A stretch of DNA of 64,000 nucleotides from Calcarisporiella thermophila CBS 279.70 (GCF_041956535.1 NW_027192215.1:298421-362420), one strand, 5' to 3'. Shown: positions 18,154 to 54,231, counted from the stretch's first letter. Notes: generated by a model from the letters alone, not told the origin. Numbers and translations are program-made.

Positions 18154-20611
18154 ATGAAATTCGCTATTTCAGATGGTGAATTAGCGATTAATTTCGCGTC
18201 GGTTGTGTGCGGTACACCCATAATGATACTAGTCGTTTTACTTCGGTACACACAGCCTCAGGCCACGCGTAGCATTTCTTTCAAACTAAGCTTTTGGATT
18301 GGTCTTTCCGATGCTCTCTATCGTAGTTTCTATATTATTTACGTGGCAAGTGACTTCTTAGATGAGGTCATTCCAAACAATCTCTGGCTGGGCCGAATTA
18401 TTTTTTGGTCTTTTCATTTCTTTCCTATATGGTTTTCGCTACTCACCGTGAGCATTGCTTTTGACTTGCAACTCTCGGCATTCCATAACAAGCTCACCGT
18501 ACAAAGGTATCAAAAGTGGTATCTCCCTGTATCCACCTTAGTTGCATTCGGCTTATGCTCTCCTGTGCTATTCTATGCGAGCATGGGATATGATCCAAAA
18601 CAAGTAAGCTCTTGATATTAGTTTGCACCTTATAATTACTTACCCGCTAATTCATTTATTTATTGCAGCATAGAGTCATTTATGAGTGGCCTTATGAAGC
18701 CAATCTTATCAGAGTAGTAGTTTTTATTACTGTTATCTCTCTCTGCCTCTTGTATTCCTTCACGATCATTTTCTTCTGCGCGATTAAGGTTTTCTCTACG
18801 GTATTCCGCGTAAGAAGAGAAAAGGACCATCATGGAGAGAAGAATCGCCAAAGAGAACGCCTTTTGATAATGTCTGTTCTTCGACTACTAGGATATCCGA
18901 CTGTATTTATTTTATACATGCCTGCTGAGTGTATAATGCATTATATAATTATCACTAAGACTCGCGACACACCTTTCTGAGACTTCACAGGAAAAGCAAA
19001 GGCAATCTTGACTGGAATGATCGGTATATTCAACTTCATCATATTTTTATTTAATCCGCCTTTCTCAAATGCAGTCAGCAAATTTTTTAAGAAAACACAA
19101 TGTCCACAATCCAAATCGCGAAGCATCTCATATGCATCCACTAAAATGGATGGAGGAGACAACGCGCCGCAATTTGAATCTTTTATATGGAAAAATCCAA
19201 TTAACAAGCCAGCTCTGGTAGAAGAGCAGCCTGCAACTCTTTTCAAAAAGGTTAGGTTTGTGCAGAGTTGTCCGAGAATGAAAGAGGAGTTGTTACCAAA
19301 AACCGGTGCTCAGTTGAAGGGAAATACTGCAACAAGTGCATTTGCTCTGCATCAAGTTGCATTTTCTCCATCAGATATACCAGAATCGCGTACAAGTGAA
19401 ACTGGATACAGATATATAATGGGAAGGTGTTTTTGTGCAATTACAGGTTAATATTCTCATTCGCTATTGCTAAGAGCACTTAATCTCTAATATTATCTTC
19501 ATAGGAATCCACTACATTCTACCAAATGATGAGGAGAGATAGAGAGGCTAATCAACCAACATTACTTCTTTCGGTACATTATTTTATACTTGCGAAAATC
19601 TTGAAGCATTTGTTTAAAATTCCAAACTATTAGATCATTCTTCTCCAATCGCAACTTCCAATCTCCGGTTAAAGAAAGCTTGCTGGATGGTGCAATAGTG
19701 CTAGATGTAGGGTAAATATTGCTTATTACGACGTATATTAAACATTTTTTTCTCAACTACCTTTTGTTGTGGTTAGGTGTGGACCAGGTATATGGACCAT
19801 GGAGATGGCCACAGAATACCCGAGAAGCCAGTTTCATGGCATCGACATATGCGATATGTTCCCGCAGCAAATCAGACCAGCCAACTGCCATTTTCAGATT
19901 GCGGATATCCTCAAGAGGCTACCATTTGAGGACGCGCAGTTTGACTTCATATACATTCGATGTATGAGTCTAGCAGTATTCCAGAGTGAATGGCCGGATG
20001 TGATCTCTGAGATATTCCGAATCATAAAGCCTGGAGGTTATTTGGAATTTGTCGAAGCGGGTAAGAAGAGACCGGAAGATGATTCTTTACACATAATGGC
20101 TTACATATATCACTGTAGATTATGCGATTCAATGTGACGGAAAAGCACTCCGAAAAATCACGGAAGGGAGTCAGTATATGAAATTTTGCCACAGCTTGTT
20201 TGAATATTACTAATAAGTTCTTCTCTCATGATTTTTATCGTAGTTTACAATACATTACGTGCACGAGACACTCACCCATCATGGGCGTGTAGAATCGGCG
20301 AATATTTGAGGTTCATTGGTACTGAAGATGTAAATTCCTTCTCCCATCCAATTACAGTCAGTAGTCAATCTGGTGAAGATGTGAGTTGCGGGAAAGATTA
20401 TTGGATGCACTTTCTTCGTGCAATTAAGCCGCATCTTGCTCAGGTGATGTACATCAGCCCTGAGGAATATGACGAGCTGCAGCAATGCGTTTATCGAGAA
20501 TTAAGTGCTGATAATATCCGCATTGATGTAGTGAGTACATATGGGTGGAAGCCATTTAAGATAATCCAGGTACGGGAGGATGACGAGCAGATAGATACGT
20601 TTTCAGGATAA
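18154..20611 (+). pseudogene. Disrupted 7TM GPCR-methyltransferase fusion gene
   Basis: Same 7-exon layout as 24699-27168 and 31730-34193. It has an in-frame TGA at 18978-18980 where paralogs have a Gly codon. Exon 3 (19505-19573) is 69 nt rather than 70, giving GAG GAG AGA TAG (frameshift and stop). Confidence 0.8.
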
Positions 20612-21019: not shown

Positions 21020-21180
21020 GTAAACATGATAAAAATAAAATAACGAGGGTGATATTAGCGTGCCTTAGCAAGTAGAAGATTTCCATTCGCTTTTACTTAA
21101 TAATAGCAAGCATCGTACTTTAAAAATTGAATTGATGAGAATGTAAACAGAGACATTCTTTTTATCTCAGGTGTTTGGAG

Positions 21181-21715
21181 ATGAAATTTGGATATCTGAA
21201 GAAGAATTGGCAAATAAGTTCGCTTTAATTGTATGCACTGCGCTCATTCTGTGTTAGTTTCCTCGCTACATTCAGCCTCAGGCTAGGTGTAGTACCAAAC
21301 TTAGTTTTTGGACTGGCCTTTTTGATACTTTCTACCGATACATCATTTATGCGGCAGATGATTTCCACGATGAAATCATGCCAAACAACAACCGGCTCGG
21401 TCGGATTATTGCGTAGTCTTTTTTATTATTCATGTAGTTTCCATTGCTCACTGTGATTATTATTTTCAACTTATAGATTTCAGCTTCCGCATGAAGTTCA
21501 GCTAACCTTATGGAGTATCACACAAAAATAGGAAAAGGCATAAAAGGAGAGAAGAATAGGGAGGGTCTTGTTATGAAGGCTGTGCTCCGATTCCTGGGAT
21601 ATCCGCTGGTACTCTATTTGCTTGCCAGCAGAATGCATGATACATTATTTAATCTTAACTATTTCTCGTAGCAAATTTTGGCGATGCCACAGGAAATGCG
21701 AAGACAATAATACTA
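21181..21715 (+). pseudogene. Heavily decayed subfamily B GPCR
   Basis: Nucleotide remnants of MKF.ISE.ELA, RYIQPQA, LSFWTG, GEKNR, VLRFLGYPLV, PAECMIHY and TGNAK, with many indels and internal deletions. Confidence 0.75.
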
Positions 21716-22556: not shown

Positions 22557-23785
22557 ATGAACTTTGCCATTACAGATGGAGAATTGGCGATTAATTTCGC
22601 GTCAGTATTTTGTGGTGCACTCATAATGATACTCGTCGTTTTCCTTCGGTACACACAGCCTCAGGCCACGCGTAGCATTTCTTTCAAACTAAGCTTTTGG
22701 ATTGGTCTTTCCGATGCTCTCTACCGCAGCTTCTATATTATATACGTGGCAAATGATTTTGTCGATGCTGTTATGCCAAACAATCTCTGGCTGGGTCGAA
22801 TTATTTTTTGGTCTTTTCATTTCTTTCCTATATGGTTTTCACTACTCACCGTGAGCATTGCTTTTGACTTGCAACTCTCCACATTCCAAAACAAACTCAC
22901 CGTACAAAGGTATCAAAAGTGGTATCTCCCTGTATCCACCTTAGTTGCATTCGGACTATGCTCCCCAACGTTATTCTATGGAGGTATGGGATATGATCCA
23001 AAGCAGGTAAGTTTTATCTTTTTATAATAGTTTGCAATTTTCGGCAATTTACTCGCTATTTTATATATTTATTGCAGCATAGAGGTATCCTTGATTGGCC
23101 TTATGAAGCCAATCTTATCAGAGTAGTAGTTTTTATTACTGTTATCTCTCTCTGCCTCTTGTATTCCTTCACGATCATTTTCTTCTGCGCGATTAAGGTT
23201 TTCTCTATGGTATTCCGCGTAAGAAGGGAAAAGGACCTCCACGGAGAGAAGAATCGTCTAAGAGAGCGCCTTATGATAATGTCTGTTCTACGACTACTAG
23301 GATATCCGGCTGTACTTATTTTATGCATGCCTGCTGAGTGTATAATGCATTATTTGATAATTACCAACACTCGCAATACATCTTTCGGAGACTCCACAGG
23401 AAAAGCGAAGGCAATTCTGACCGGAATGATCGGCATCCTCAATCTGATCATATTTTTATTCAACCCAGCTTTCTCAGGAGCCCTTAGTAATTTCAAAATA
23501 TTCAAAGATGTTGAATATATGAAATATTGGAATCGGACCGCTGCCTACACAGATTATGCCAAGAAGTATCCGCATTTGCAACAAATTGCTGAAAATGCAC
23601 AGGCAGATGCCAAAGCGAGTGCAAATATAAACAAATTGGACACTGGGAAATCGGATGAGCCAGAGATTTCTCGAGTGCAAGAACAAAAGATCCTACCAAA
23701 TCAACACTTACTTGACGCAAAAAGAAAAGAAGATCGTATTCTTATACCCTTTTCGAGCGGGATTAGCGACTTTTCTACTCGTTAA
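22557..23785 (+). CDS. 7TM GPCR, subfamily B, receptor only with an unrelated C-tail, 385 aa (exons 22557-23006, 23078-23785)
   Basis: 7TM region closely matches the 18154 copy. Sequence after FNPAFS is unrelated to the fusion linker and no methyltransferase exons follow. Confidence 0.85.
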
Positions 23786-24698: not shown

Positions 24699-27168
24699 AT
24701 GAAATTTGCAATATCGAAAGGAGAGCTTGCCATTAATTTTGCCTCGATCGTATGTGCTACACTCATTATGGGACTTGTAGTTTTCCTTCGGTACACTCAA
24801 CCACAGGCTACACGCAGTATTTCTTTCCGACTTAGTTTCTGGATTGGACTTGCTGATGCTCTCTACAGAAGTTTTTATATCATATATGTGGCAAGCGAAT
24901 TTATCGACTCTGTCATACCCACCAATATCTGGCTCGGTCGGATTACTGCTTGGTCATTTTATTTTTTTCCTATGTGGTTCTCTTTGCTTACAATGAGTAT
25001 TGCATTTGATCTGCAACTTTCCGTATTTCACAAACACCTCAAAATACAGAGTTTTCAAAAGTGGTATTTAGCATTTGCAACTTCAGTCGCCTTCGGCTTA
25101 TCCTCACCTGTGCTATTCTATGGGTCCATGACATACGATCCGAACCTGGTCAGCTTACTTCTGATATCACTCCGCTGTTTCGAAATATTAACTTCATATA
25201 ATTTCAAATAGAAAAGAGTAATTTACGAGTGGCCATATGAAGCCAATCTTGCCAGAGTAGCGGTATTCATCGCTGTCGTCTCTATCTGCATATTGTATTC
25301 CTTTTCGATCATTTTTGCATTTGTGCTTAAGGTTTTCATCATGGTATATCGCTCAAGGAGAGAAAAAGACCAACAAAGAGAGCGAGACCGAATCAGAGAA
25401 CGCCTTGTTATGATGTCTGTGCTGCGACTCCTAGGATACCCAGTAGTACTCATCTTGTGTTTGCCAGCTGAATGTATAATGCAATATTTGATCTTTACCA
25501 ATTCTCGCAACACACCATTTGGCGATACCACAGGAAGAGTGAAGGCAATCCTGACTGGAATGATCGGTATCTTCAACCTGATCATATTTTTCTTTAACCC
25601 TTCTTTTTCAAGTGCCATCAGCGAACTTTTCAAGAAATCAACATGTCCGCAGTCTAAATCGCGAAGCATCTCATATGCATCTACTAAGTTGGATGGAGGA
25701 GACACCATTTTGCCTCATTTTGAATCCTGGATATGGAAAAATTCAAATAGAAATTCGACACCATCAGATGCAGTACTGTCTGCAGCTCGCTTCAAAAAAG
25801 TTAAATTTGCACAGGATTTGCGAGAGATAAAAGGCCAGATAGAACAAGTTACTAGCGCCCAATTGCAGCGAAATTCTACCTCAGCAAGCACAAATGCTCA
25901 GTGTCGACTAGTGTTTTCACCATCAGAGGTACCAGGATCGCACATAAATGACAATGGATACAATTGGGTAATGAGAAGGCGATTCTGTGCTGACTCAGGT
26001 TTTTATACCTATTCACATCGTCTTAGAAAATGCAATCACTGACTTGTACATCTCACAGAGATTCACTATATTTTACCAAACGATGAGGAGGAGATGAATC
26101 GGTTAATCAGTCAGCACTATTTCTTCCGGTATAGTATTTTGTAATAGTGCATATCATGAAGCATTTACTTGATATGCTTCACTATTAGATCTCTATTTTC
26201 CAATCGCAATTTCCTCTCTCCGGTTCAGGATGTCCTGAGAGATGGAGCAATGGTTCTGGATATAGGGTAAGTGTGCATTTTTAGGTGTACTTTAGTTATT
26301 TCTCCTCAGCATTCCTCTGATGTGGAAAGGTGTGGGCCAGGTACTTGGACTATGGAAATGGCTACAGAATACCCGAGAAGCCAGTTTCATGGCATCGACA
26401 TATGTGATATGTTCCCACAACAAATCAAACCAGTTAACTGCCACTTTCAGATTGCGAACATACTAAAGAAGCTTTCATTTGATGATGCATCGTTTGACTT
26501 TATATACATCCGATGTATGAGCTTAGGAGTATTCCAGAGCGAATGGGTGGAGGTGATTGCAGACGTGCTCCGAATCATAAAACCTGGAGGATACATAGAA
26601 TTTGTCGAAGCAGGTATTAATGCCCTAGATAATTGCAAATCGAATGAAAACCTTACTAATATATCACTTCGATTAATGTAGATTATGCGATCAAATGTGA
26701 CGGTAAAGCACTCCGAAAAATCACGGATGGAAGTAAGTATATAGGTTTCCTTTTGGCTCAGCTTATTTGAATGATACTAAGGGTTTCTTAATTTTCATCA
26801 CAGTTTACAACACATTACGTGCACGAGACATTCACCCGTCATGGACGCGTAGAATTGGCGAATACCTGAAATACATTGGTGTTGAAGATGTAAATGCTTT
26901 GTCCCTGCAATTTCCAGTTAGTAGGCTATCAAGAGAAGATGGGGGCAGTGGAGTGGAATATTGGATGCAATTCCTGAGTGCAATGAGGCCACATCTTGCT
27001 CAAGTGATGTATATTAGTCCCGAAGAATACGACGATCTACAACAAAACGTCTATCAGGAATTGAGTGCAGAGCGCTTTAACATTGATGTAGTTTGTACAT
27101 ATGGTCGAAAACCATTTAATATAACCCATGAAGTGGAGGATAGGCAAGTCGAAGTGCATCATAAATGA
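24699..27168 (+). CDS. 7TM GPCR-LaeA-like SAM-dependent methyltransferase fusion, 694 aa (exons 24699-25148, 25212-25998, 26059-26128, 26189-26266, 26330-26613, 26682-26732, 26804-27168)
   Basis: Exons sum to 2085 nt with an open frame. 7TM followed by RRFCADS|EIHYILPNDEEEMNRL, VLDIGCGPGTW, FHGIDI, FDFIYIR and RIIKPGGYIEFVE. Confidence 0.85.
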
Positions 27169-27312
27169 TTAATCGTGAGTTAAATCAGATAGATACCATT
27201 TGAAAAAAAAAGGATGTGTAATATCAGACTTATATTACCCGTGTATAAGGCAAAAGTCGTAGGATTTTAAAAGAAACGTTCTTTTTTTATTTGGTACAGT
27301 AATTCCATCAAG

Positions 27313-27700
27313 TTATATTTTGATTAATATTATAGTTTTGACATAAAGTGCGTTCTGGCTCAAAATGTCGGAAAAAAAGTCATAACATTCCTTCTTTTTG
27401 CTTTCGACGCATACCTCACACATATCGGTATTCTTGCACGCTTTCTTAAAGTTTTTCGGAATTATAGAATAAAATTTTTGATATGGAGATCTTGAAATCA
27501 AATTAGAAATTTTAAATCATTTGAATTTTCAGCTTTGTATCGTTCATATACCGAACCTGGATATATCTCTCACCATCATACCCTTTGTCAGTTTCTTCTT
27601 CTATTACATCACCTCTTTTCCTTTTCAAAACTTTATCTGTTGCAATCCGAGATGACTCCATAAGAAAATCCAAAACAGCTTTGGGCATTAAAAAGCCAGG
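27313..27700 (-). mobile_element. Possible decayed DNA-transposon fragment (Sola-like Cys motif)
   Basis: Broken frame reading RYMNDTKLKI...ISRS..KFYSIIPKNFKKACKNTDMCEVC resembles the F..P....TDxCxxC segment of some DNA transposases. No TIRs or catalytic core seen. Confidence 0.3.
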
Positions 27701-28620
27701 TACAATTAAGAATAAGCAAAGGTTCTAATAGGAATTTTTTGAAGGAATATTCACCTGGTTCACGCTTCATTGCTCAGTTTGTTTCTAGAGAGGGAGTTGT
27801 ACCATTCTGTTTATTCGACTGTCCCCCATTCAATCGTGTGCCGTCTATATTTAATATATAATAGCAAATTAGTAGAAAGTAAATAATGGTTTGTAACTAG
27901 ACATTAGCTTATGAGGTAAGCGATACATATTTCGATTTAACTACTCGAGCAGTACGTGATTTGTTATTATCAAACCTAAAGCCCAGCCGCCTTAGAAATT
28001 CCCGTGGAAACCCCTCAGAAACTAAGAAAACAGCTGTTTCTTTGCTCATGTCTTTCACCTCTCTGTAGGACGGTAAGTTGACTTAGGGTATGAAGATAAG
28101 AATTATCTGTATGTTTTAGCAAATGAGCATATAATGCATCCCATCTCTGAAATGAAAAGTGAATTGAGTAATGCTGTCCAATTGCTCTTTGTAAGCAAGA
28201 AAAGATAAAGCATCTTTTAAAATCGCCTTGCCATTTTTCCGTTTAACATTTGGCAAGAAATGGGTCCCTAACTATGAAATAAAACGGGAAATGGAAGTCG
28301 AAAGAGTTGCAATAATTTGATGACGAGAAGTTGAAGAACGCAAAACAAAAGTATTCTAGAATTATTTCTCTAGTAATCAAATTTATAAAAGATATATCAA
28401 CAGTTGCAGATACTTCTGATACACTGATTTTTCTATTTCTAAATCCAGTATATCTGCTCAGACTTGGAGTCACCTTTTAAATTTCAAAAGGGTGAATATT
28501 TTGTTAGCAAGCATTTCAAAAATCGAACCTGAATAGCCCAAATTAAATTTGACTCGGAGTACTTGTGACTAAAATATCTATGACTTTTATTACCCTTAAG
28601 CTTTCACGGTATATAGAGCT

Positions 28621-28635
28621 TTGTCCTTGAGAAAA
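28621..28635 (+). promoter_or_regulatory. Orphan TTGTCCTTGAGAAAA motif with no + strand gene behind it
   Basis: Exact match with conserved flanks (aagctttcacggtatatagagc...aactctataatggc). It faces the 3' end of the inverted GPCR copy. Confidence 0.6.
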
Positions 28636-28714
28636 GTTAACTCTATAATGGCAGTAAAAAAGAGGATCAGAACACCCCCATTAACATTTTAATATTTTCT
28701 AATAGGACACTGCC

Positions 28715-29884
28715 TCATAAAAACTTTAAGTTGTATCCGTCTGAGTAACAAGTATTGGGGGTGTTCACGCTTCCGCTGACCCTTCTAACTCGAGCTGTAG
28801 ACAGCACATTATCTGTTAGAGCCGACTTGCTCTTTAAATTATTCCATATCCATGGTTTTGTCTGAAGTATGGTATCTCCTTCATCCAACCTGGTGGATGC
28901 ATATGAGATACTTCGCGATTTTGACTGCGAATATGTTGTTTTCTTTAAAAACTCGCTGATAGCATTTGAAAAAGACGGATTAAACAAAAATATGATGAAA
29001 TTGAAGACGCCTAACATTCCAGTCAAGATTGCCTTCACTTTCCCAGTAGCATTGCCCAAAGGTGTATTACGAGTGATGGTGAAATTTACATAATGAATTA
29101 TGCACTCGGCTGGCATACACAATATGAGCACTACTGGATATCCTAGTAGTCGCAGCACGGACATTATCATAAGCCGTTCTCTGAGGCGGTTCTTTTCTCC
29201 GTGGATATCTTTTTCTTTCTTCACGCGAAATACCATACTAAAAACCTTAATCACGCAAGCAAAAATGATCGTGAAGGAGTATAAAACACATCCAGAGATT
29301 ACGCCAATGAACACCACCACTCTGGCAAGATTGGCTTCATATGGCCATTCATACGTGACTCTTTGCTATTATGTTAATAGTGTTGCTGGAATTAATATAC
29401 AGAATATTAAATTTTATATCTAAGGAAAACTCGCATGTTTCGAATCGTATATCATAGTCGCATAGAAAAGAATAGGGGACGACAAACCGAATGAGACCGT
29501 TGTTGCAAATAAAAGGTACCATTTCTGGTACTTTTGTATAGTGATTTTATGGTGAAAGACAGAAAGTTGCAGGTCAAAAGCAATGCTCACTGTAAGCAGC
29601 GAGAACCACATTGGGAAAAAGTAAAATGACCATACAAGAATTCGACCTAGCCAAATGTTATTAGGAATGACTGCATCCAGAAAATCTAGCTCTGTGTACA
29701 TGATATAAAAACTCCGGTACAGAACATCAGAGAGACCAATCCAGAAGCTGAGTCTAAAGGAAACACTACGTGTGGCCTGAGGCTGTGTGAAGCGAAGAAA
29801 AGCCACAAGGATCATTATGAGAGTAGCGCAAACAATCGAGGCAAAGTTAATGGCTAGTTCACCATCGGGAATGTCGAATTTCAT
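28715..29884 (-). CDS. 7TM GPCR, subfamily B, inverted and truncated within the fusion linker, 366 aa (exons 29884-29435, 29365-28715; GC-AG intron)
   Basis: 7TM intact. The tail matches the fusion linker (SKSRSISYASTRLDEGD...WIW...VLSTARV) and then diverges abruptly to a stop. The donor at the conserved intron position reads GCGAGT. Confidence 0.75.
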
Positions 29885-30047
29885 TTCCAAATACCTGTTA
29901 ATAATACTTTACAAAATAATTGGTTTCATTGTTTCATGTTCTAATAATTTTGGGCTTACTTGTTTAATGAATGCAAAGATTGAAAATGTTCTAAGCAGTT
30001 AAACTGATCAGCCTGTCTAGTTTTATACAGGCATTATTAAGGTTTAT

Positions 30048-30062
30048 TTTTCTCAAGGACAA
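30048..30062 (-). promoter_or_regulatory. TTGTCCTTGAGAAAA motif of the inverted GPCR copy
   Basis: Reverse complement ttttctcaaggacaa, beginning 178 bp upstream of ATG 29884. Confidence 0.65.
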
Positions 30063-30804
30063 AATACTTTATACCACTGAATCTTGTAGGTTTAATAAGG
30101 TTACCAAATTAAGCAAAGTATTGATTTGAAAATGGACAGTTTTGGTCTATATATTGTAAAGACGAATCATATATATTTAACATATCTTCAGAGAAACTAT
30201 CTAAATTTTATTATTCTAATGAGTAGATATAGGATAATAATTTAAATATTTTTCAAATTATCCACTACATAATAAATAAGGGCCTTCATCCTCAACCATT
30301 TGACCATTGTTAAACAGTAATCAGTCAGATGTACAAACTAATCTACGTGGGTTCAAATCCTACTTTCCCTATCAACGCTCACTCCTCAGTTATGGCCACT
30401 GCTCACTTAATCATTTGTGAGATTTTATTACTGGAAAGATTGCTCCTACATTGATTACATCGATTTCACCTACACGTTATTCACGGGCAACATCGATACT
30501 TATCAATCAAGATCTAGTGCCTTAAGAATTTGTTTATTATTACAATTAAGTGCTGAAATTATAAAATAAAATTAAAAAGTAAACATTATACATTGAAGGT
30601 GATTAATAAAATTGTTAGTTATATAACATTCACATATGTTCTACTTTGAACCCAACCGGCATATCCTATTCTATCCCGATTATACTCTATCTGCTCATTG
30701 CCTTCCCTTACCAGGTTTATCTTAAATGGTTTCCGGCCATAGGTACTCACTACATCAATGCGGATACTCTCAGTACTTTATTCTCAATAAATATAAATTT
30801 TTCC

Positions 30805-31133
30805 ACCAAATTACTGATGGAAGTCGGTATATGACCTTTTCCACCACTTGTTTGAATGTTACCAAGAGGGTCTTATTTTTCATCACAGTTCACAACACAT
30901 TACATGCACGTGACATTAACCCATCATGGACGTGTAGAATTGGCGAATATCTGAGGTTCATCGGTGCTGAAGATGTAAATTCTCTCTCCCTGACATTTCC
31001 GTTTAATGGGCTATCTGGAGAAGATGAGAAGCTTGGAATGGATTATTGGATGCAATTTCTGAGTGCAATGAGGCCGCATCTTACTCAAGTGATGTATATC
31101 CGTCCCGAAGAATATGACTATCCTATTAATTAG
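30805..31133 (+). pseudogene. Orphan 3' fragment of the methyltransferase module (end of exon 6, intron, most of exon 7)
   Basis: ITDG|gt...ag|HNTLHARDINPSWTCRIGEYLRF...YWMQFLSAMRPHLTQVMYIRPEEYD, then a premature end. Upstream exons are absent. Confidence 0.85.
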
Positions 31134-31541
31134 AGCCTATGTTGGCTCTAGGGGGTTCAAGAGCTGTAGAAAAAGGCCACCAACATAACCTGGTGTACTT
31201 TAAGATAGGTTAGCAACTCTATATTACACTATTGGGAGAAGGGAAAATTTTGCATTGGGCTTCCTTTTGGAAGCCTCAAGAATAAAAAAGGAGTATTCAT
31301 TGCATCAAAAATGAATGTATAGAATGTATATTGGTAGAGTTATTAGCTCTCAAAAAAAAAAAGGACATATTATACTACCTATTTTTCTGGACCAATCAAA
31401 CTTCGTAATCCTTATTTCCGGATATATTACTGTATGTCTGATTCATCTTGGAATCTCCCAAATTATAATCAAGTATCTAGTACATATAAAGGAAGTGTGA
31501 CTTTAAAGTCTAAGTGTAACGAAGTTTTGAGATACAGAGCT

Positions 31542-31556
31542 TTGTCCCTGAGAAAA
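31542..31556 (+). promoter_or_regulatory. Variant motif TTGTCCCTGAGAAAA
   Basis: Begins 188 bp upstream of ATG 31730. Confidence 0.6.
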
Positions 31557-31729
31557 GAGAACTCAATAATGGCGAAATAAAAGTAGAGAAATGCGCAGAT
31601 GGATGCAGGTAAGCCCACACACCCTAACTCTCCTTCATTTTATTAGTAAGACTATCCAATAATACTAATTAAAAAAAATATTGTAATTAATACATTTTAA
31701 AATTTTCGATAATTTACAGGAATCTGGAG

Positions 31730-34193
31730 ATGAGGTTCGATATATCAGATGGGGAACTAGCGATCAATTTCGCGTCAATAATATGTGCTACATTTATTAT
31801 GGTTCTTGTCATATTTCTTCAATATACTCAGCCCCAGGCCACACGCAGTGTCTCTTTTAGACTCAGTTTTTGGATTGGTCTCGCGGATGCTCTCTACCGA
31901 AGTTCTTACATCATATATACCGAACTAGATTTCTTAGATGCAATCATGCCAAACCACATCTGGTTAGGTCGAGTTATTTTATGGTCTTTTCATTTCTTTC
32001 CAATGTGGTTCTCACTACTTACAGTGAGCATTGCCTTCGACCTGCAATTTTCCGTATTCCACCAGCACATACCCATACAGAGATTTCAAAGATGGTATCT
32101 CTTATTTGCAACCTTGGTCGCATTTGGCCTATCTTCTCCAGTTTTATTCTATGCAAGTATGAGATATGACGCGAATACTGTGAGTCTACCTCACATATCA
32201 ACTAATGCTCTCCAGACATGTTCCCACTAACCTTGTTCTCTATGGATTAGAAAAGAGTCATTTATGAATGGTCTTATGAGGCCAATCTTATCAGAGTAGT
32301 GGTGTTCATTATTGTTGTGTCCCTCTGCGTATTATACTCCTTCTCCATCATATTTGCCTGCGTGTTAAAAGTTTTTTTATTGATAATTCGCGAGAGACGA
32401 GAAAAAAATCTCCACGGAGACAAGAATCGTGGTAGGGAATGGCTTGTAATGATGTCAGCTCTTCGGCTCCTTGGATATCCTCTGGTACTCATAATATGTT
32501 TGCCACCTGAATGCATAATGCATTATATCATCATTTCCAAGACTCGCAATACAGTATTTGGTGATTTCACGGGGAGAGCGAAAGCGATCTTAACAGGAAT
32601 TCAGGGAATTCTCAATCTAATCATCTTTTTGTTCAACCCAACTTTTACAAGTGCACTGAAGGAGTTCTTCATTAACAAACCGGTGGGATTTCCGTCAAAA
32701 TCACAAAGTGTCTCCTACGCCTCGACAAGGATGAATGGGGTAGACACGATACCGCATTTTGGATCCTGGATATGGAAGCAATCTGCTAGCAAATTGGATC
32801 CCATATGTGAAAATATGTCTCCTACTTCTAAAAGGGTTAAATTTGCAAATGTACCAGAGATGAAGAAAGGAAAGATGTCAAATATTGGAGATGCATTGCA
32901 ATCCAACCCCTCAATAACAGTCACATCAGATCAGAAACAGTTTGTATTTTCACCAACAGATATACCGGAATCCCAACCTAATGACCGAAACAAATGGATA
33001 ATGGGACGACGGTTTTGTGCCGATTTGGGTATCTTTCATTTCATAGTGTTGCTGTGAGCATGTGATCACTGACTTTTACTATGCAGGGATACATTACATC
33101 TTGCCAAATGACGAGGAAGAGATAGACCGATTGATTAGCCAGCACTTTTTCTTTCGGTATGAATTTCATACGCATATATTAACTGAAGCATCTGCTTTAA
33201 GATTTTCCATTATTAGATCACTATTCTCCAATCGCAATTTTCTCTCTCCAGTTCAAGATATCCTGAGAGATGGAGCAATGGTTTTGGATTTAGGGTAAGT
33301 GTGCATATACAGATGCTTTTAGATATTCTTTCTCAGCGTTTCCTATCGTTGCTAGGTGTGGACCTGGCACATGGATCATGGAGATGGCTACCGAATTCCC
33401 GAGAAGCCAGTTTCACGGCATCGACATATGTGACTTGTTCCCTCAGCAAATCAGACCGGACAATTGTCATTTCCAAGTTGCGAACATCCTTAAGGGACTG
33501 CCGTTTGAAAACGCGCTGTTTGATTTTATATACATCCGATGCGTGAGTCTAGCAGTGTTCCAGAGCGAATGGGCTGGTGTGATTACAGAGATACTCCGAG
33601 TCCTGAAACCTGGAGGCTATTTAGAATTTGTAGAAGCGGGTAAGAGACTACCAAGAGCTAACGCGTCGCTCACAAAACTGACATATTTCACCTAACTTCT
33701 GTAGATTATGCGATTCAGTGTGAGGGGAAATCTCTCCAGAAGATTGCAGATGGAAGTCAGTTTAAAAACTTTTACCGTAGCTTATTTGAATGAGACTAAG
33801 AGGCAATTATTATTCATCATAGTTTACAACTCATTACGTGCACGAGATATTCATCCATCGTGGACACGTAGAATAGGCGAATATCTAAGGTCGATTAGCG
33901 TTGAAGATATAAGTTCTCTATCTCAGCCCTTTCTCGCTAGCATTTTCTCTGGAAAAGATGGGGAGCGTGGGGTGGTTTACTGGATGCAGTTTCTAAGTGC
34001 ATTGAAGCCGCATCTTGCTCAAGTGATGTACATCAGCTCTGAAGAGTACGACGAACTACAACAATGTATCTGTCGGGAACTGAGCACAGAGCGTATCCAA
34101 ATTGATGTAGTATGTACATACGGCCGAAAATCAGGTTACATTGACCAGGCAGAGGAGAATGAAGATCAAATAGAAATATACTCGGATGGATAA
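31730..34193 (+). CDS. 7TM GPCR-LaeA-like SAM-dependent methyltransferase fusion, 693 aa (exons 31730-32179, 32251-33028, 33087-33156, 33217-33294, 33356-33639, 33705-33755, 33823-34193)
   Basis: Exons sum to 2082 nt with an open frame. GRRFCADLG|IHYILPNDEEEIDRLISQH, VLDLGCGPGTW, FHGIDI, LPFENALFDFIYIR and RVLKPGGYLEFVE. Confidence 0.88.
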
Positions 34194-37554: not shown

Positions 37555-38726
37555 ATGGATGATGTACAGCAAGAGTATTTTGCGTTAAATTTAGCATCCA
37601 TAGTGTGTGCATTTTCGATCATGGCCATGGTCGTATGGCTAAGATGGACACAGGTAGACATTGCCAGCACTATTTCATTCAGGCTGTCATTTTGGATAGG
37701 TTTTGTGGATGTGCTCTATCGTGTATGTATAGCCTCTTATTGATCCCCTCTTCTGCCTTCAATCGGTTCCGGGGCACTTACCATGCATCTCCATTCGTTT
37801 GACTCAGGGCATATTTCTCTTTCGCACCAACTACTCTCTCATGGACACTCTGCTCCCCTCCCAGCCCCTGATCGTGCGTCTTCTTCTGGGATCAATCTAT
37901 ATCTTCCCACTTTGGTTTGCATTCCTTAATGTGACCATAGCCCTCGACTTGCACCTCTCCTTTCTCTGTCGACAATCCAATATGAAGAGGTTCCAACGTT
38001 GGTATCTTCCAGCGTCTTTCTTCGCAGCAATAGTCCTCGGAATCCCGATTATGCTAGTTGGGACACCTTACTGGGACAAGGAGCTTGTGAGTGAAGTGGC
38101 TAAAAATGTTCCCCCACCCACATCTTAGAGCTAATGTTTCGTTGTGCGTGTAATAGCACTCTGTCATGTTCGACTGGAACTTCTCTACGTCCATCGCAAT
38201 CGAGCTTCTTTGTTCAGATATATGGATGGCATTTGCGATTGTGTATGCCTTCTTCATTATTCTCGCGGTGCTCTTTCAAATCCTAAAGGATCTCAAGGCT
38301 ATAAAAGTACGCACCCAAACTATTCAGTACGAATTTCGAGAGAAGGAGGGGCAACTTGTCTGCTCAGTTCTGCGAATCTTACTCTATCCATGCGTGCTAG
38401 TCATCTGCCAGCCTGCGACCATTGTGGTTAGCTGGCTTTTCGTCACCGACACCGCGTTTACTAAGCTCGGTTCGGCAATAAGACGCATAGAGGCGATTAC
38501 GAATGGGTTGCAAGGAATTCTTAATCTCATTGTCTTTCTCATCAATCCTGCAGTTGCACGAGCACTCTGTCGTGTACCATGGATCAAAAGATTTTTAAAT
38601 CGCATATTTCCAAGCAATAACCAGATCCACATGGTTGAAAACGGTGCGGCGATTGACATCATGGTTGCTCGTCTGGACAATCAAGGTGCCATGAATTCCA
38701 GCTCAAATATACCCCCTAGTGCATAA
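37555..38726 (+). CDS. 7TM GPCR with subfamily A exon structure, 338 aa (exons 37555-37722, 37808-38086, 38157-38726)
   Basis: TISFRLSFWIGFVD, WFAFLNVTIALDLHLSF, RILLYP and GLQGILNLIVFLINP motifs. 279-nt middle exon. Confidence 0.87.
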
Positions 38727-42996: not shown

Positions 42997-43783
42997 TTTG
43001 CCGGGTGGGGGAAGAAAATTTGGAGCCGTCTTGCCGAATTCTTGGAGGAGGAGAGTGACTGTTAGACTCAATGTGATGATAAAAATTTTCTGTTATTTTT
43101 TCTCTTTTCTTCGTTGTTGCATTGCACCTTCACCCCCTTCATTGTTGCTGTTTTTGTCTCATTGGCAACTATATCAGAGTCCTATTTATTTATCCTCGAT
43201 ATCCCACCCTACGTCTGCATTGCTGGTAAAAATCGTCTTTTGCGTAGCGCTGGCTATAGACAAGAGAAGCTCCGTGGCCGATATTAACCCTGATCTCCCC
43301 ATTGCAGCCACGATTACGTCTCTTTTCCTTCTCCACACGAACTGACGTAGTCCTGTATATAAGGGGTTGCAAGAATCTAGCCATTCCATCTAGCATTGCC
43401 AATAGGCTATTTATCATTCCAGCTTCCGCCCTTTTTTATTGGATCACCACGCCCTTGCGCAATCAAGTATTCAAGGTAGGCTATCTCTTCCCTGATCTAT
43501 TACGTGTACTTTGGGGGTGTAGGCTAATGCCATGATCTCTAGTTTTGGATTCAACCAGAATCTCCGAATTGATTGGTGGGGGGGAATTCTCCGGGGATTA
43601 CACAGCCGGTAGGGCATCGCCTCGCTATCTCTCACATTTGCTGGGCATTAACCCTCCTCCCTTTTGCCATTAGACCCCCCAACCAGCACACAAGAGCCAC
43701 TCACATCGTCAAGACCACCCACCCACAACCTCCCCTCTGACAACGAGGACGAAAGCGCGCACCCTCGCAAGCGCGCACGCACC

Positions 43784-46118
43784 ATGTCTAAATCTCTTCC
43801 CTCCGCCCTTAACGGCACTCCCTCCCTCTCAACGGCCACCCCCTCCAAATCGCTAGCCTCCACGCCGACGCCGACATCCGCAGGCCTGCTGACGAAGCTG
43901 GGGCGTGCTGGCGAGCTCTTCAAGACGGAGGAAATGGTGAGGCTAATGGTCCAGGCCCTGCGGGATCTGGGGCTCAACCAGTCCGCCACCCAGTTGGAGG
44001 CGGAGAGTGGGGTCAGCCTTGAAACGCCGGCTGTCTCCACGTTCAAGCGCTTTGTCCTCTCCGGAGACTGGGACGACGTGGAGACCGCTGTGCTTGAGTT
44101 TGTCGACTCGACCGATGCGCCGCAAGTCCAGCTCCTCATACGACGGCAAAAGTACCTCGAGCTGCTGGAACGGCGGCAGCTGAAGTCAGCGCTCGGCGTG
44201 CTGCAAGGGGAGCTGACCCCGTTGTTGAGCCTAAACGTGGAGGCCAAGGAGGGCATCGAAAAGGGGAGCAACAGGGGCTTGGGGCAGGAGACTTTGCACA
44301 CGCTGGCGAGCTATATGATGTGCGGCAGTGGCGACGAGTTGAGGCGACGGGCGGCATGGGATGGAGCGAAGGGGAAATCACGAAAAGCATTACTTGTCGA
44401 GTTGCAGAGTAGGTGTTTCAGCATCCTTTGTTCTTTGGTTTTGTCACCTTGCCTCCCGTCTGCTTACTTGATTTATCGACTCCTTTCCAACTTACACACA
44501 CCCACCCCTTCAATGGTCATCCCATTATTTTCTCGTCCCGTCTCTTGTTCCATGGCCAATTCCATTGACAGATTTTAGAGTGCTCCACTAACCCATATGC
44601 TCTCCCTCCCTTAGAATACATCTCCCCGACGATCATGGTGCCCGACCGGCGGTTGGAGCAACTGCTGCTGCAGGCAACCGAGCACCAGCGGGCCCAGTGT
44701 TTGTACCATAATGCAGGGGATGAAGAGGAGGACGAGGACGAGGAGGAAGAAGTCTCCTTGTTAACCGACCACAAATGCGACAAGTAAGCTGATGGGCGAT
44801 GGGTCCTCTTGACGGCTCACTGTGATTAACCCCCTCCCCCATCTCCTCTAACTGGCAGGGCTAGATTCCCGTGCACCACTCTGCACGTGCTAGAGCACCA
44901 CACCGACGAGGTCTGGTACATAGCCTTCTCCCACGACGGCCGGCAGCTCGCGTCTGCCTCCAAGGACCAGAGCATCGTCATTTGGAGCGTCGACGACGGA
45001 TACCTCTTGCGGGAGTTGATAGGGCACACCCACGAGGTGTCCTTTGTGGCCTGGTCGCCCAACGACGAGATGATTCTGAGCTGCGCCAACGACGGGGTCC
45101 GGTTATGGAAGCTCCCGGTGAGTAGGCTTTTCTCTCTCCCCTCGCCCCTTCATTTTCAGCAGCCCAATTCTATTACTGGACATGCTGCGCCACGTTTCCT
45201 AAGTATCTATAACCTAACCCTTTCCTCCATCCCCCTCTACCCTCCCCCCTACAGGAGGCGGAGTGCATCCGGACCATTCAACGGCACACCGATCAGGTCA
45301 CCTCGTGCGCGTGGCTGCCCGACGGCCAGCGCTTTGTCACCGCGGGCATGGACAAGAACCTCTATCTGTGGAGTATCGACGGCACCATGCTGCACCGGTG
45401 GACCACGGGGCGCATCATCTCGCTGGCCATGGACCCGCGGGGAGAATTCGTGGTGGGGGTGTGCTACGATCGGCGGATTAGGCGATATAACCTGATTGAC
45501 CGGGTGGAGGAAAAGTAAGCTTTCTCTCTCTCTCTCTCTTTACTCCACCGACGCGACGAGTCTAACCTGTATTGCCCTGTGGCTTGCAGCTATATCCAGG
45601 AGAGCGAGCCAATCACGTCTCTGAGCTTGGCGGCGGATGGGCGCCACGTGCTGGTGAATCTGAAGAGTTCGGTGAGTAGCCGCCCGCCGGGTCCCTCCCA
45701 GCTCTGGGCGGGCCCGCGGACGATGAGAAGGAGTCGCCTCCCGTGCGGTACTAATGTGTGTTTGTGTTCTGCGCAGGAGCTCCACCTCTGGGACATCCAG
45801 GACCGGCTTCTCCTCCGCACCTACACGGGGCACCGCCAGGGCGAGTTTGAGATCCGGTCGTGCTTTGGCGGCCACTCGCAGCGCATCATTGCGTCCGGGT
45901 CCGAGGACGGGGCGGTGTACTTGTGGAGCCGGGAGCGCGGAGCGCTCATGGAGGTGCTGGTGGGGCACGGCGGGGTGGTCAACGGGGTGGCGTGGAATCC
46001 GCGCGATGCGCGGATGTTTGCGAGCGCGTCGGACGACAAGAGCGTGCGGGTGTGGGTGGGCGAGCGCCAGCGGCCCGAGGGCAAGGGCAAGGGCAAGCGG
46101 AAGGGCGGCCCTGTGTGA
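43784..46118 (+). CDS. LisH/CTLH + WD40 protein, WDR26/Gid7-like CTLH E3 ligase subunit (start uncertain; frame open from about 43650)
   Basis: EMVRLMVQALRDLG..QSATQLEAESG (LisH), LIRRQKYLELLE (CTLH), WDGAKGKSRKALLVELQ, MVPDRRLEQLL, HTDEVWYIAFSHDG, IRSCFGG...IASGSED and NGVAWNP...FASASDD. Confidence 0.88.
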
Positions 46119-47854
46119 ACCGGCCAATCCCATGCAGTCTCGTTACCACGCCCCCTCCCCCCCCGCGCTCTACTCTCTACTGCGCCGTGCGGTTCTCCTA
46201 CTCCCTGTGCATTGTCTCGGTTCTCTTTGTTGCTATCTCCATCGGGGGACGGCTTTGGTTTTCCTGGTTATTCTTTTTCCGTGTCTTTTGTCTCCGTTTC
46301 TCGCCATGTGACTGGTTTTCTCATTCCCTGCTTGTTTCCGCCCTTCTTCCACATCTCAATCCATTACAATACAATATACTAAACAGGAAGCTGAGATTTT
46401 TTGGGTTTTTCCAAATTTTCCCGGCGCCTGCCATTGGGGTTTTCTCGCGTGGATAAAAATCGTTCCATGTGGCCCAGTCGCACTTTATCGCTTCTGGCCC
46501 AGCGTCGGCCTTTGAAAGTGGGATTCTCCATTACTAACCGCCTCGGCGTGTGGCAACGCGCGAGTCAGGCGGATTTGGGTTAGGCGCGGGAGGCGGTGAC
46601 GTTCGCGGGGAGCCATCCCCGGCGGAGGGGCGGCGGGGGCGGCGGGGGCGGCGGCTAGGAGGCCCCCGGCGGGGTAGGTTAGGTTAGCTCGGGCGATCTG
46701 GCGAGAAAAGGGGGGAAGATGGGCGGAGGAGGCGATTGGGCGGGGGGAAGGGTTTGTTCCACGGGATTGGTTGGTGGGAAAGATTTGTTTTTGAGTTGCG
46801 TTTGGGCTGAACAATCCAAGAGGAGGTAGGTTGTTCAGCAGTGCGACTGTGCTGGGGGGGGGGGGGTGGGGTCCGCCGCGGCCAGAGGGGCGGTAGGGGA
46901 TCCGGCCGTGCGATGATCTGGTTTCTCCGGCTTGGTGCGCAATATAATTTTTTTTTTTTCCACCGGCACGGAGCCGGCAGGGTGGGCGGGCGGGCTTGGC
47001 CCAAGATTGGTGAATTCTAACCTCGTCTTGTGTAAACGTGGACAGATTGGCTTTTTTTAATTTCTGATTTCCTGAGGGAACAATGCGGGCGGCGGGCATG
47101 AATCACGGCGGCGCCGGCGCGGGCTGCGGCATGCGCATCGGCGGGGGGCAGATCGCAGGCGAGGCCCAGGAGCGCGGGAATGTCTCGTTTGTCAGGCGGT
47201 GCTTATGCGATCGGAGGGCGATTGGATGCGCGCAGAATTGCAGCATTGAATTGGACAAAAGAAGAAGGGGTGAAACGCGGTGATTTGCATTTTTTTTTTC
47301 CCTCTTCCAATGCCCCTGACATGACCACCCGGAGCCCACACACAAATCACCGCCAGCCGCATCAGCCCGGATCGAACCGCCAACAGGCGGGCTTCTTTTC
47401 CGGCTGCGGGGCTCTGGCCCAGGCCGCGAAGGGAAAGCATAAGCAAAATTCCAGTGTCCGCATCGCGCATTTTTCTTTTTAGAGTTCTCAGACGGGCTGG
47501 CCCAAGGACTGGTTGCGGACGAGTCGGCCGGGTGGTGTGTTGGTTTTACACGCACGCCCGCCCCCTCTTTTCTCATCGCCCTCTTGAACTCAAATTGGTT
47601 TGCCTCCCTCAACTCTACTTTTGTTGGCCTCTTCTGCCCACGGCCTCATCCGCATCCGCCCTCTCTCCCGCTCTCTCTCTCTCCCTCCCGCGTCTGGAAA
47701 ATGACCAGGCCCCTCCCGCGTGCACTTGCTCTTGCCTCTTGCTGAATTGCGCGCTAATTGCCTCCTCGCCTGCTCGCCATCTACCCGTCCCCATCCCCCG
47801 CATCCCTCCTCTCTCTCCCAATCCATCCGCTGCCGCTCATCCCCGCGCCTGACA

Positions 47855-49180
47855 ATGACGGCTCATCCGGCCTCGTCGGCCGCCCCATGGTACCCCCTCG
47901 CCATGATGGACATCCTCCGCCCCCCACGCGTCATCCCCGCCTCCGCACAGCCCGCGCTCTCCCTCGCACCCGCCGCGCCCGCCCCCCCGCCCGCCGCCCA
48001 GCCGCTCATATACCTCCCGCAGCCCTCCACGCTCCTCCCGCATCCATCGCATCTGCCCCTCCCGCTCCCCAAGACCGTGTACGCCGCGCCGGCGTCGTGC
48101 GTCCCCGCCTACCGCCTGCCGCCGCTCGTCTTCCACCGCCCCATCGCCTTCCCGCCGCTGCGGCAGCTGCAGCCAATGATGGAGGTGCATCCGTCGCCGC
48201 CCGCTTCGCCGCCGCGCACCGTGCCTGAGCCGCGGCAGGAGGAATGCCTGGCGGACATGACGGCCCGCATGGCATGCTTCTTGTGGTACGGCCGGCCCAG
48301 CCCTCCCCCCGCATGCTCCCTGGCCGGCGGGAGAGGCGGCGGAGCGGACGGAGACAGTCGCATGCTGTTCGCCCGCTTTTGCCGCCGGCTCTTCGAGGCC
48401 ACGCGGGTCACGTCCGCCAACTGCCTCCTCGCCCTCCTCTACATCTACCGATACCGACGCGCCCAGCCCAACGTGCGCGGCTCGCCTGGCTGCGAGTACC
48501 GCCTCTTGACCGTCGCGCTGCTGCTGGCGAACAAATTCCTCGACGACAGCACCTACACCGCGCGGACGTGGGCGGACGTGAGCGGGATCCCCGTGCGCGA
48601 GGTGGTGGTGATGGAGGTGGAGTTCCTGGCCGCTCTCGACTACAAGCTCTGGGTCGACCCCCACGAGTTTGCCGGCTGGAAGGAGCGCGTGGAGCAGTGG
48701 ACCGGCATGGGCGATGGGCTCCTGGTGTCCCTGGCGTCCAACTTCGGGTCGCCGGCGCTGCGCACCCCCCTGAGGCTGGTTGCGGTGCCGTGCGAGGACT
48801 CGCCGCTGATGACGCCGGGGTACGGCTCGCCGACCCTCAACCTATTGCACCAGCAGCAGCACCAGCACATTTGCTACCATAAGCAGCATCAGCAACCCCA
48901 ACCGCTCCAGCACCCGCAGCCTCTTCAGCGCCAGCAGCCATACCACTACCATCAAATCACGCCCGTCACAAGCCCCACCCGCCGGAGGCGGAGGCGCCAG
49001 CAACAACAGCAGCACTACCAGCAGCTTTTGTCCGCCCAGCAGCAGCAGCAGATCCAGGTGGTGCCCGAGTGGACCGAGGACCGCGCGTGCGGTCTGAAAC
49101 GGCGTAGTGATGAGGATATGGAGGAGCGAACGAAGCGGCTGGCAACGGAACGGGCATGGTATGGGGTTATCCATGTCTGA
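47855..49180 (+). CDS. Pho85-type cyclin (PCL/Clg1-like), intronless, Pro-rich N-terminus and Gln-rich C-terminus
   Basis: FCRRLFEATRVT...LLALLYIYR...EYRLLTVALLLANKFLDDSTYTARTWADVSG....VMEVEFLAALDYKL cyclin box. First ATG is at 47855. Confidence 0.88.
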   Translation: MTAHPASSAAPWYPLAMMDILRPPRVIPASAQPALSLAPAAPAPPPAAQPLIYLPQPSTLLPHPSHLPLPLPKTVYAAPASCVPAYRLPPLVFHRPIAFPPLRQLQPMMEVHPSPPASPPRTVPEPRQEECLADMTARMACFLWYGRPSPPPACSLAGGRGGGADGDSRMLFARFCRRLFEATRVTSANCLLALLYIYRYRRAQPNVRGSPGCEYRLLTVALLLANKFLDDSTYTARTWADVSGIPVREVVVMEVEFLAALDYKLWVDPHEFAGWKERVEQWTGMGDGLLVSLASNFGSPALRTPLRLVAVPCEDSPLMTPGYGSPTLNLLHQQQHQHICYHKQHQQPQPLQHPQPLQRQQPYHYHQITPVTSPTRRRRRRQQQQQHYQQLLSAQQQQQIQVVPEWTEDRACGLKRRSDEDMEERTKRLATERAWYGVIHV

Positions 49181-53202: not shown

Positions 53203-54231
53203 ATGGACCTCAATTCCGCACATTTCCCGGCCCCTGGTATGTGTGAACCATTCACAATGCTTATCTCTCTCACTCTCTATAGCATTTATTATTAACGCAT
53301 TATCGTTCTAGACATAGACAAAAGCCTTATTTCTCACAAGAATGAGACTCATTCTCCTGGGGCGGTGACAACAAGAATTTTGGATGGACATTCAGAAAGT
53401 GTTTACTGCGTTCAATTTGATGAGGAGAAAATAGTAACTGGTTCCAAGGATCAGACCATCAAAATCTGGTGTGCCAAGACTCTACGATGCCTGAGAACGC
53501 TAAGTGGTCACAAAGGGTCTGTAGTGAGTTTACAGTATGATTCGCGTTGGTTGGCAAGTGGGTCAGTCGACTCAACAATAGTACTTTGGAATATGAACAC
53601 CTATTTGCCGGTACGCACGCTGACCAACAACACATCGAGCGTACTAGGTTTGAGCTTGGGTGAAAATATAATTGCGGGCAGCTTCAAGGATTCCACCATT
53701 AAGCTCTGGCAAATCGAAACAGGATTGCTATTGCATACTCTTACGGGCCACATCGGCCCATTATCCGCGTTGAAACTTCATGGAAGTCAAATTGCTTCAG
53801 GGTCTGCCGACCGACTTGTAAAACTTTGGGACGTAGAGACGGGAGTTTGCCTACGCGACTTTTCAGGGCATACGCGAGGCATCTGCTGCCTACAATTCGA
53901 CGGGCGTGTTATTGTTAGTGGAGCAAACGATTGTAGCATTAAGATATGGGATGTGGCGACAGGCGACTGTATTCGTACACTTGAGGGTCATACAGATTTA
54001 GTCAGGTCGATGCATCTCCGAGATGCAATCCTTGTCACGGGGTCCTACGACCGGAGTATTCGAGTCTGGGATTTGACCACAGGCGAATGTTTGTCGCACC
54101 ATCCAGATTGTCACGATGGCTGGGTGTACGGTGTTATATTTACTGAATCGCGCATTGTTAGCGTTGGCCAAGACGGCAAGGTTGTAGTGATGGATTTTGA
54201 AGAGGGCATAGTTCCCCGTGGCAGCGCTTGA
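53203..54231 (+). CDS. 7-blade WD40 protein resembling the beta-TrCP/FWD-1 propeller, no F-box, 317 aa (exons 53203-53236, 53312-54231)
   Basis: VYCVQFDEEKIVTGSKDQTIKIW, GHKGSVVSLQYD, GHTRGICCLQFD and GHTDLVR repeats follow the beta-TrCP repeat pattern. Confidence 0.8.

Follow-up and report, generated by a model that had tools for sequence, protein, structure and literature searches.

Does this locus encode, in one gene, a receptor that carries its own enzyme? The stretch analysed here, called the window throughout, is 64,000 nucleotides (nt) of the genome of Calcarisporiella thermophila CBS 279.70 (NW_027192215.1:298421-362420), a thermophilic soil fungus of the Mucoromycota. An earlier note on its sequence had described two genes, here A and B, in which a seven-transmembrane (7TM) G-protein-coupled receptor (GPCR) runs on into a class I S-adenosylmethionine (SAM) methyltransferase of the LaeA/Llm type. 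From comparison of the copies across the genome we conclude that this architecture is real, selected and multi-copy, and we infer with high confidence that it is spliced and made as one protein. The two gene models, in window coordinates, are as follows.

24699-27168, plus strand: gene A, a 7-exon GPCR-methyltransferase fusion with an open frame of 694 amino acids (aa); exons 24699-25148, 25212-25998, 26059-26128, 26189-26266, 26330-26613, 26682-26732 and 26804-27168
24699-25148, plus strand: gene A exon 1, transmembrane helices TM1-TM4 and the start of the extracellular loop 2 hairpin, placed by alignment to the modelled paralog P0001
25212-25998, plus strand: gene A exon 2, a single frame without stops through TM5-TM7, helix 8 and the linker into the opening motif of the methyltransferase (WVMRRRF)
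25638-25955, plus strand: gene A linker, residues 293-398, 24% Ser/Thr and predicted to be disordered
25999-26058, plus strand: gene A junction intron, 60 nt, phase 1, within the methyltransferase N-terminal motif
26059-27168, plus strand: gene A exons 3-7, class I SAM methyltransferase (YILPNDEEE, DIGCGPGTW, GID, FDFIYIR, IKPGG)
31730-34193, plus strand: gene B, a 7-exon GPCR-methyltransferase fusion with an open frame of 693 aa; exons 31730-32179, 32251-33028, 33087-33156, 33217-33294, 33356-33639, 33705-33755 and 33823-34193
33029-33086, plus strand: gene B junction intron, 58 nt, phase 1, with a CTGAC branch-like site

Both genes have six GT-AG introns at matching positions and phases, neither has an internal stop, and exons 3-6 measure 70/78/284/51 nt in each. 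The junction intron of gene A carries a CTGAC branch-like site too, and the NP motif of its TM7 lies at about 25596-25601, inside exon 2. On the exon layout, the open frames and the junction introns the earlier note holds, as it does for the two stops it named (26042 and 33057), where the frame ends if the junction intron is retained, and for a third, pseudogenised copy of equal layout (copy C, listed below). Its linker of about 120 aa is right if counted from the TM7 NP motif, but from the end of helix 8 to the start of the methyltransferase the linker is 103-106 aa long. Compared with gene B and with a paralog on contig 4, the linker of gene A has a ratio of nonsynonymous to synonymous substitution rates (dN/dS) of 0.3-0.45. 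The public model of gene A, VTP21DRAFT_6134, has the junction and is missing TM1-4 and part of TM5; that of gene B, VTP21DRAFT_6135, begins in TM6 and has an identical junction.

One objection to these models is that the fusion is an artefact of gene prediction, made either from two neighbouring genes or from a receptor transcript in which the junction intron is mostly kept. The models do come from genomic sequence, the junction donors are weak (GTTTTT in gene A and GTATCT in gene B), stops lie inside the retained intron, genes A and B and two further copies have an in-frame Met immediately ahead of RRF, and a public model, P0040, begins in the linker of a broken copy. The comparison across the genome speaks against this objection. 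Matching by exon gave 62 matches to exon 1, 46 to TM5-7 and 36 to the enzyme core, and spliced alignment placed at least 12 receptor-then-enzyme loci on 7 contigs, eight of them open, one of which has an assembly gap over its first 21 codons, and the other four broken by stops or frameshifts. Some contig-10 loci seemed to have long "open frames", but these turned out to be runs of N and were rejected. The first motif of the enzyme sits on the receptor exon at every one of the 12 loci, and the junction intron, 56-66 nt long, is likewise constant in position and phase in all 12. A stand-alone methyltransferase gene of the same genome, described below as the donor, carries this intron at the same position, where it interrupts the same motif. 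A single 1240-nt exon of the contig-17 copy holds the start codon, the seven helices, the linker and GRRF.

The linker itself adds to the case for one gene. Over its 100-112 codons there is no stop in the receptor frame in any of the eight open copies, as against 1-8 in each of the other frames. The composition-based chance of a stop-free linker is 0.001-0.025 per copy; the product over copies, 1e-21, overstates the significance, since the copies are related. Synonymous sites are near saturation among the open copies while the linker stays stop-free, and in the three closest pairs, with a synonymous divergence (dS) above 1, dN/dS is 0.09-0.12 for the 7TM part, 0.07-0.09 for the enzyme and 0.29-0.45 for the linker. 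The Met adjoining RRF is absent in four of the eight open copies, the exon-3 frame closes 2-22 codons upstream when the junction intron is left unspliced, and the halves lie too close together for a terminator and a promoter to fit between them. We therefore regard an artefact of gene prediction as very improbable, and the claim of the earlier note that this is one gene and not two, made from the motif on the TM7 exon, gains from the open, selected linker and the conserved intron. Pairwise distances of the 7TM and enzyme parts correlate (Mantel rho 0.86), which shows joint inheritance and not functional coupling, as related copies share their history. The full fusion is already present in four public models, VTP21DRAFT_8596 (704 aa), 3239 (764), 2653 (743) and 1079 (674), which are named uncharacterized and have only methyltransferase Pfam hits; the architecture has remained hidden in public annotation because the receptor escapes Pfam.

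Is the N-terminal half a GPCR at all? An AlphaFold model of residues 1-290 of P0001, a paralog 67% identical to gene A over the 7TM part, has a predicted local distance difference test score (pLDDT) of 87.8 and a predicted template modelling score (pTM) of 0.85, and comprises seven helices, a beta-hairpin in extracellular loop 2 and a helix 8. All of the top 50 Foldseek matches in the PDB are GPCRs, with template modelling scores up to 0.73; Atlas structure matches reach 0.82. The language-model neighbours at 0.94-0.95 are mostly Dicty_CAR, Git3 and 7tm_2 clusters, but the structure matches found beside them are of class A. These results support the earlier note in indicating that the N-terminal half is of the GPCR fold; within it, the half may be nearest to the cAMP-receptor-like/Git3 kind. 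At the sequence level, the 7TM part is not recognised in Pfam, PDB-sequence and NCBIfam searches. None of the Pfam GPCR families PF05462, PF11710 and PF11970 comes above cut-off in any member, the best score being 20 bits against a cut-off of 21 (PF11970, expectation value E 7e-4) in the unfused paralog P0022. Weak matches of the 7TM part to COX1, VirB3 and ParM were discarded as hydrophobic noise. The sequence relatives of the receptor are nearly all from Calcarisporiella, plus two unfused intronless contigs from one metagenome-collection sample. By the usual GPCR topology, the N-terminus would lie outside, which would place the enzyme in the cytoplasm. The earlier note had suggested that the receptor possibly works without G proteins; this is unsupported, given about 15 G-alpha loci in the 28-Mb genome and a cytoplasmic receptor face that is complete, helix 8 included. 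Ascomycetes have 2-4 G-alpha subunits, and about 15 is many for a fungus.

The C-terminal half, judged by its sequence and model, is an intact LaeA/Llm-type class I SAM methyltransferase, as the earlier note had said. PF13649 and PF08241 are above cut-off, and the class I hallmarks are intact (Rossmann-like fold, motif I, the acidic residue after strand 2, motifs IV and V), with the SAM motifs conserved across the fused copies. All open copies contain GRR..Y.LPND.E..RL..QH, which we take to be the LaeA/Llm-like N-terminal motif, and the enzyme is 37% identical over 158 aa (E 3e-31, pairwise) to a Fusarium protein with such a motif, P0031. In the full-length model the two halves match GPCRs and class I methyltransferases respectively; the nearest solved structures to the enzyme are small-molecule and phosphoethanolamine methyltransferases, at only 13-19% identity. 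In the enzyme tree the fused clade sits among uncharacterised Mucoromycota proteins, and the stand-alone enzyme nearest to it is encoded elsewhere in this genome:

contig 9, about 267500-269500, minus strand: VTP21DRAFT_11468 (P0039), a stand-alone LaeA-type methyltransferase

Over 349 aa, the C-tail included, this protein shares 58% identity with the contig-15 fusion. Its exons of 70/78/284/51 nt and its junction intron match those of the fused genes, and it falls into one clade with the eight fused enzymes at 99/99, with no firm position among them. These sequence relationships indicate that the enzyme derives from the VTP21DRAFT_11468 lineage, which is new here. The protein begins with MGNVKST followed by basic residues, which we take to be an N-myristoylation consensus. 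The next stand-alone paralog, VTP21DRAFT_9374 on contig 5, starts with MGHVKST, so the MG-type end would be ancestral, and an MGxxxS/T start is found in 12 of 51 stand-alone relatives (Mucoromycota and chytrids). The donor was thus probably a membrane-anchored enzyme before the fusion, and the receptor apparently replaced its lipid anchor. This changes one premise of the earlier note, that such enzymes are normally soluble, since the donor and many Mucoromycota relatives begin with the consensus; in the literature searched, nothing was found on myristoylation of LaeA-like enzymes. Another methyltransferase gene is located 1.5 kb away from VTP21DRAFT_11468. Another member of the LaeA-type family, P0026 from the chytrid Nowakowskiella (992 aa), starts with MGNKLT and has three tandem methyltransferase domains. 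Long methyltransferase matches from Nowakowskiella, Bifiguratus and Actinomortierella were considered as fusions and rejected, as they have no 7TM part.

How widespread is the fusion? Among 1.84 billion representatives we found none outside C. thermophila, in searches with length, word and cluster-size limits, and under the same kinds of limits none in metagenome contigs and Atlas clusters. The two metagenome-collection contigs mentioned above (L019 and L020) encode unfused receptors with stops of their own, 27-29% identical to the Calcarisporiella family; they are probably transcripts. The genome paper of C. thermophila (PMC11393059) does not mention GPCRs. Surveys of the proteins known as GPCR-bigrams describe PIPK, INPP, AC, PDE, TKL or protease domains (PMC5784254, PMC6033456) and report GPCR-PIPKs to be absent from fungi, the word methyltransferase having no occurrence in PMC5784254; amoebozoan and choanoflagellate GPCR surveys do not mention methyltransferases either. 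A GPCR-methyltransferase fusion is thus undescribed in the literature searched, which covers few subscription journals, in agreement with the earlier note.

The fused genes do not stand alone in the window. At least 11 genes or fragments of one 7TM family missed by Pfam are clustered at 7241-38726, out of about 45 loci genome-wide, and those other than genes A and B are the following.

8673-7241, 11283-10171, 13729-12614 and 16492-15396, minus strand: four more distant unfused receptors in tandem
18154-20611 (end approximate), plus strand: copy C, a fusion gene broken by a TGA at 18978, its exon 3 being 69 nt long
21168-21708, plus strand: degraded receptor fragment
22557-23785, plus strand: unfused receptor VTP21DRAFT_6133, 385 aa, of the same subfamily
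28718-29884, minus strand: inverted truncated fusion copy with the whole 7TM part and about 55 linker residues, without an in-frame methyltransferase
30511-31122, both strands: rearranged remnants of methyltransferase exons 6-7
37555-38726, plus strand: unfused receptor VTP21DRAFT_6136, the fifth of the more distant ones

The remnants at 30511-31122 are probably the lost half of the copy at 28718-29884, and the interval 28718-31122 is a fusion copy broken by inversion. Four contigs have tandem arrays in which fused receptors alternate with unfused ones, their 7TM exons homogenised and their tails distinct. One receptor subfamily is intronless in its 7TM part (fused on contig 17, unfused on contigs 2, 4, 16, 21, 32 and 38) and the others have one to three 7TM introns; the fused contig-17 gene retains all five enzyme introns.

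In the 7TM tree, whose 29 rows exclude broken copies and fragments, fused and unfused genes are interspersed, requiring six changes, and a single clade is rejected (approximately unbiased test, p 7e-8), a test that domain exchange confounds. The unfused neighbours have tails related to one another and not to the linkers, so that for most of them an origin as truncated fusions was rejected, while their 7TM parts group with the adjacent fused gene; the tail type of VTP21DRAFT_6133 is common only to unfused partners. Over the 7TM exons, copy C has 89-90% DNA identity to the unfused gene at 22557; just after them the identity falls to a background of 55%, the linker of copy C following that of gene A (70%). 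The fused/unfused pair on contig 4 is 81% identical in protein, compared with 65-70% across contigs. The simplest reading of these sequences is that tandem cassettes exchange their receptor domain, which would keep similar sensors on two kinds of tail. A linker profile misses the contig-15 copy and detects the one on contig 17, at 12.3 bits, a score higher than those of 600 shuffles, and the fusion may have originated once, or up to three times.

The rest of the window contains genes of other kinds. A POT-family peptide transporter lies at 699-2340 (minus strand) and a 369-aa open frame with no Pfam match at 5605-6714 (plus strand). To the other side are a WDR26-like LisH/CTLH/WD40 gene (43664-46456), a PF08613 cyclin (47720-49180) and a WD40 protein (53365-54231), all on the plus strand, with the region of 44-50 kb being GC-rich (56-61%). 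A 1114-aa open frame at 57273-60617 (minus strand) has an Ion_trans match near its end (E 7e-7) and is probably part of a large cation channel gene.

What could such a receptor do with its enzyme? The steps of the fusion itself (donor, lost myristoylation end, tether, tandem duplication, selection and exchange) can be traced in the sequences compared above. A copy of the fungus' own membrane-targeted methyltransferase gene (MGNVKST) would have lost its myristoylation end and been joined behind helix 8 of a cAMP-receptor-like 7TM protein through a flexible tether of about 105 residues, and tandem duplication would then have multiplied the fusion, both of its halves staying under purifying selection, next to unfused receptors that swap receptor domains with it. 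With the receptor taking over from the lipid anchor, the position of the enzyme would become conditional. Ligand binding would probably be read by way of ordinary G proteins, linker phosphorylation, clustering or internalisation, and would thereby set the place and time at which the tethered enzyme encounters its partner, in all likelihood a membrane signalling protein or one reached after release. This would resemble the way VapA holds VipC-VapB at the Aspergillus membrane until a signal arrives. We favour such conditional tethering, in which an activated receptor alters where the enzyme is, which partners it has or whether it is released, because of the long disordered linker, the membrane-targeted donor and the many G proteins, and on balance we think it probable, though by no means assured. 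A bolder version, which we offer as a possibility and consider doubtful, is that these are ligand-controlled methyltransferase receptors, each paralog sensing a different molecule and setting the activity or release of its own enzyme; methylation would then be an immediate GPCR output, with the unfused partners forming a G-protein branch for the same ligands.

Several other explanations start from the same fusion. The 7TM part could merely anchor a constitutive methyltransferase, for example one with a lipid or incoming small-molecule substrate, the ligand being irrelevant to the enzyme. An anchor swap alone would explain the fusion, given the myristoylation motif of the donor, and the nearest structures, for all their low identity, do act on small molecules and phosphoethanolamine; yet an anchor has no need of a dN/dS near 0.1 across all seven helices, nor of eight receptor domains that have diverged to 29-72% identity while the enzyme is conserved, and we find this explanation unlikely. 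Alternatively, the ligand may switch the attached methyltransferase directly within the molecule or dimer, with no G protein, as in rhodopsin-guanylyl cyclase. The two halves are intact and co-diverging, the linker motifs ISYAST, W-x-W-K, KVKF and VFSP are kept among the six closest copies, and the arrangement corresponds to model A for GPCR-bigrams (PMC6033456). Such direct allostery is nevertheless distinctly unlikely in our estimate: the linker is long, divergent (21-44% identity) and predicted to be disordered (pLDDT about 21 in the full-length model), with no coiled coil or interface, the receptor domains are swapped with unfused receptors that must signal otherwise, and the genome has its many G-alpha loci. 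The earlier note had proposed a one-component receptor with possible release of the enzyme; the disordered linker favours the tethering or release and argues against rigid one-component allostery.

A further explanation is an ordinary GPCR for which the methyltransferase is a scaffold or a feedback device, through SAM-dependent binding, automethylation, or methylation of the receptor or G protein for adaptation. It agrees with what is reported of LaeA and LlmF, which need their SAM site, for which only automethylation has been found and which act through protein binding (PMC4299510), and heterodimers would fit with the tandem pairing of fused and unfused genes whose receptor domains are similar. 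This explanation overlaps in part with conditional tethering, and we judge it decidedly improbable.

The conditional tethering that we prefer has its own weaknesses, all of which count against it. The fusion was found in a single species and is described here from genomic DNA, as a GPCR and a catalytic domain in one open reading frame. Given the weak junction donors, a receptor-only protein could arise from A and B by retention of the junction intron. The N-terminally truncated public models of these genes look like ab initio calls, and thus amount to a second prediction. With four of the 12 fused loci broken, single copies are dispensable. The full-length model predicts no receptor-enzyme contact (pTM 0.39), and myristoylation of the donor is predicted from its motif. 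LaeA has no established substrate besides itself (PMC13006574), and for an enzyme of its type a methylation output is therefore itself an assumption.

If these readings are right, the fusion makes methylation one of the few enzyme outputs that are built onto GPCRs, and within the reach of our searches no earlier catalytic GPCR-bigram with a GPCR fold is described from a fungus. In fungi, development and secondary metabolism are under the control of LaeA-type methyltransferases, for which no upstream signal is established. Together, the fusion and the donor with its myristoylation motif place this family at the cytoplasmic face of the membrane, near GPCRs and G proteins, which suggests that outside signals could control methylation there. 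In practical terms, the fusion provides a handle for proximity labelling and substrate trapping, proteins of a thermophile are suited to cryo-electron microscopy, and a ligand-controlled methyltransferase, if true, would be a new part for synthetic signalling.

Comparison with known systems helps to place the fusion. The receptor shares with the cAMP-receptor-like (Dicty_CAR) and Git3-Gpr1 proteins the GPCR fold, a D at the end of TM3, YP in TM6 and NP in TM7, and its language-model neighbours carry PF05462, PF11710 or PF11970; unlike Dicty_CAR/Git3 members, the Calcarisporiella receptors pass no Pfam GPCR cut-off. The enzyme has the GRRF..Y.LPND..E.DRL..QH, D.GCG.G.W, GID, FD and KPGG motifs of the LaeA/Llm class I methyltransferases, the nearest group of that type being the uncharacterised Mucoromycota proteins P0039 and P0041-P0047. 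In contrast to the stand-alone enzymes the fusions would be membrane-integral through the receptor, and the Mucoromycota proteins that start with MG are far nearer to them than the ascomycete Llm proteins are; the likeness need not mean orthology to LaeA. The VapA-VipC(LlmB)-VapB complex of Aspergillus nidulans likewise has LaeA-like methyltransferases at the plasma membrane, held there by VapA and thought to be released by a signal (PMC4299510). With GPCR-bigrams such as the GPCR-PIPK RpkA of Dictyostelium the fusion has in common an N-terminal 7TM part, a cytoplasmic C-terminal catalytic domain and a small gene family. It differs from them in its accessory domain, a SAM methyltransferase in place of PIPK, INPP, AC, PDE, TKL or aspartic protease, and from the oomycete and protist examples in having a fungal host and looking lineage-restricted and not ancient. 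A membrane sensor with a cytoplasmic effector is also found in the 7TM-RGS proteins, whose RGS domain is non-catalytic, and in enzyme rhodopsins (the fungal rhodopsin-guanylyl cyclase and Rh-PDE; PMC5967339, PMC7644710). Rhodopsin-guanylyl cyclase is both fungal and under proven direct control. The enzyme rhodopsins, though, combine a microbial rhodopsin with a short structured linker, whereas in the Calcarisporiella fusions a long linker, predicted to be disordered, leads from a GPCR fold to a methyltransferase.

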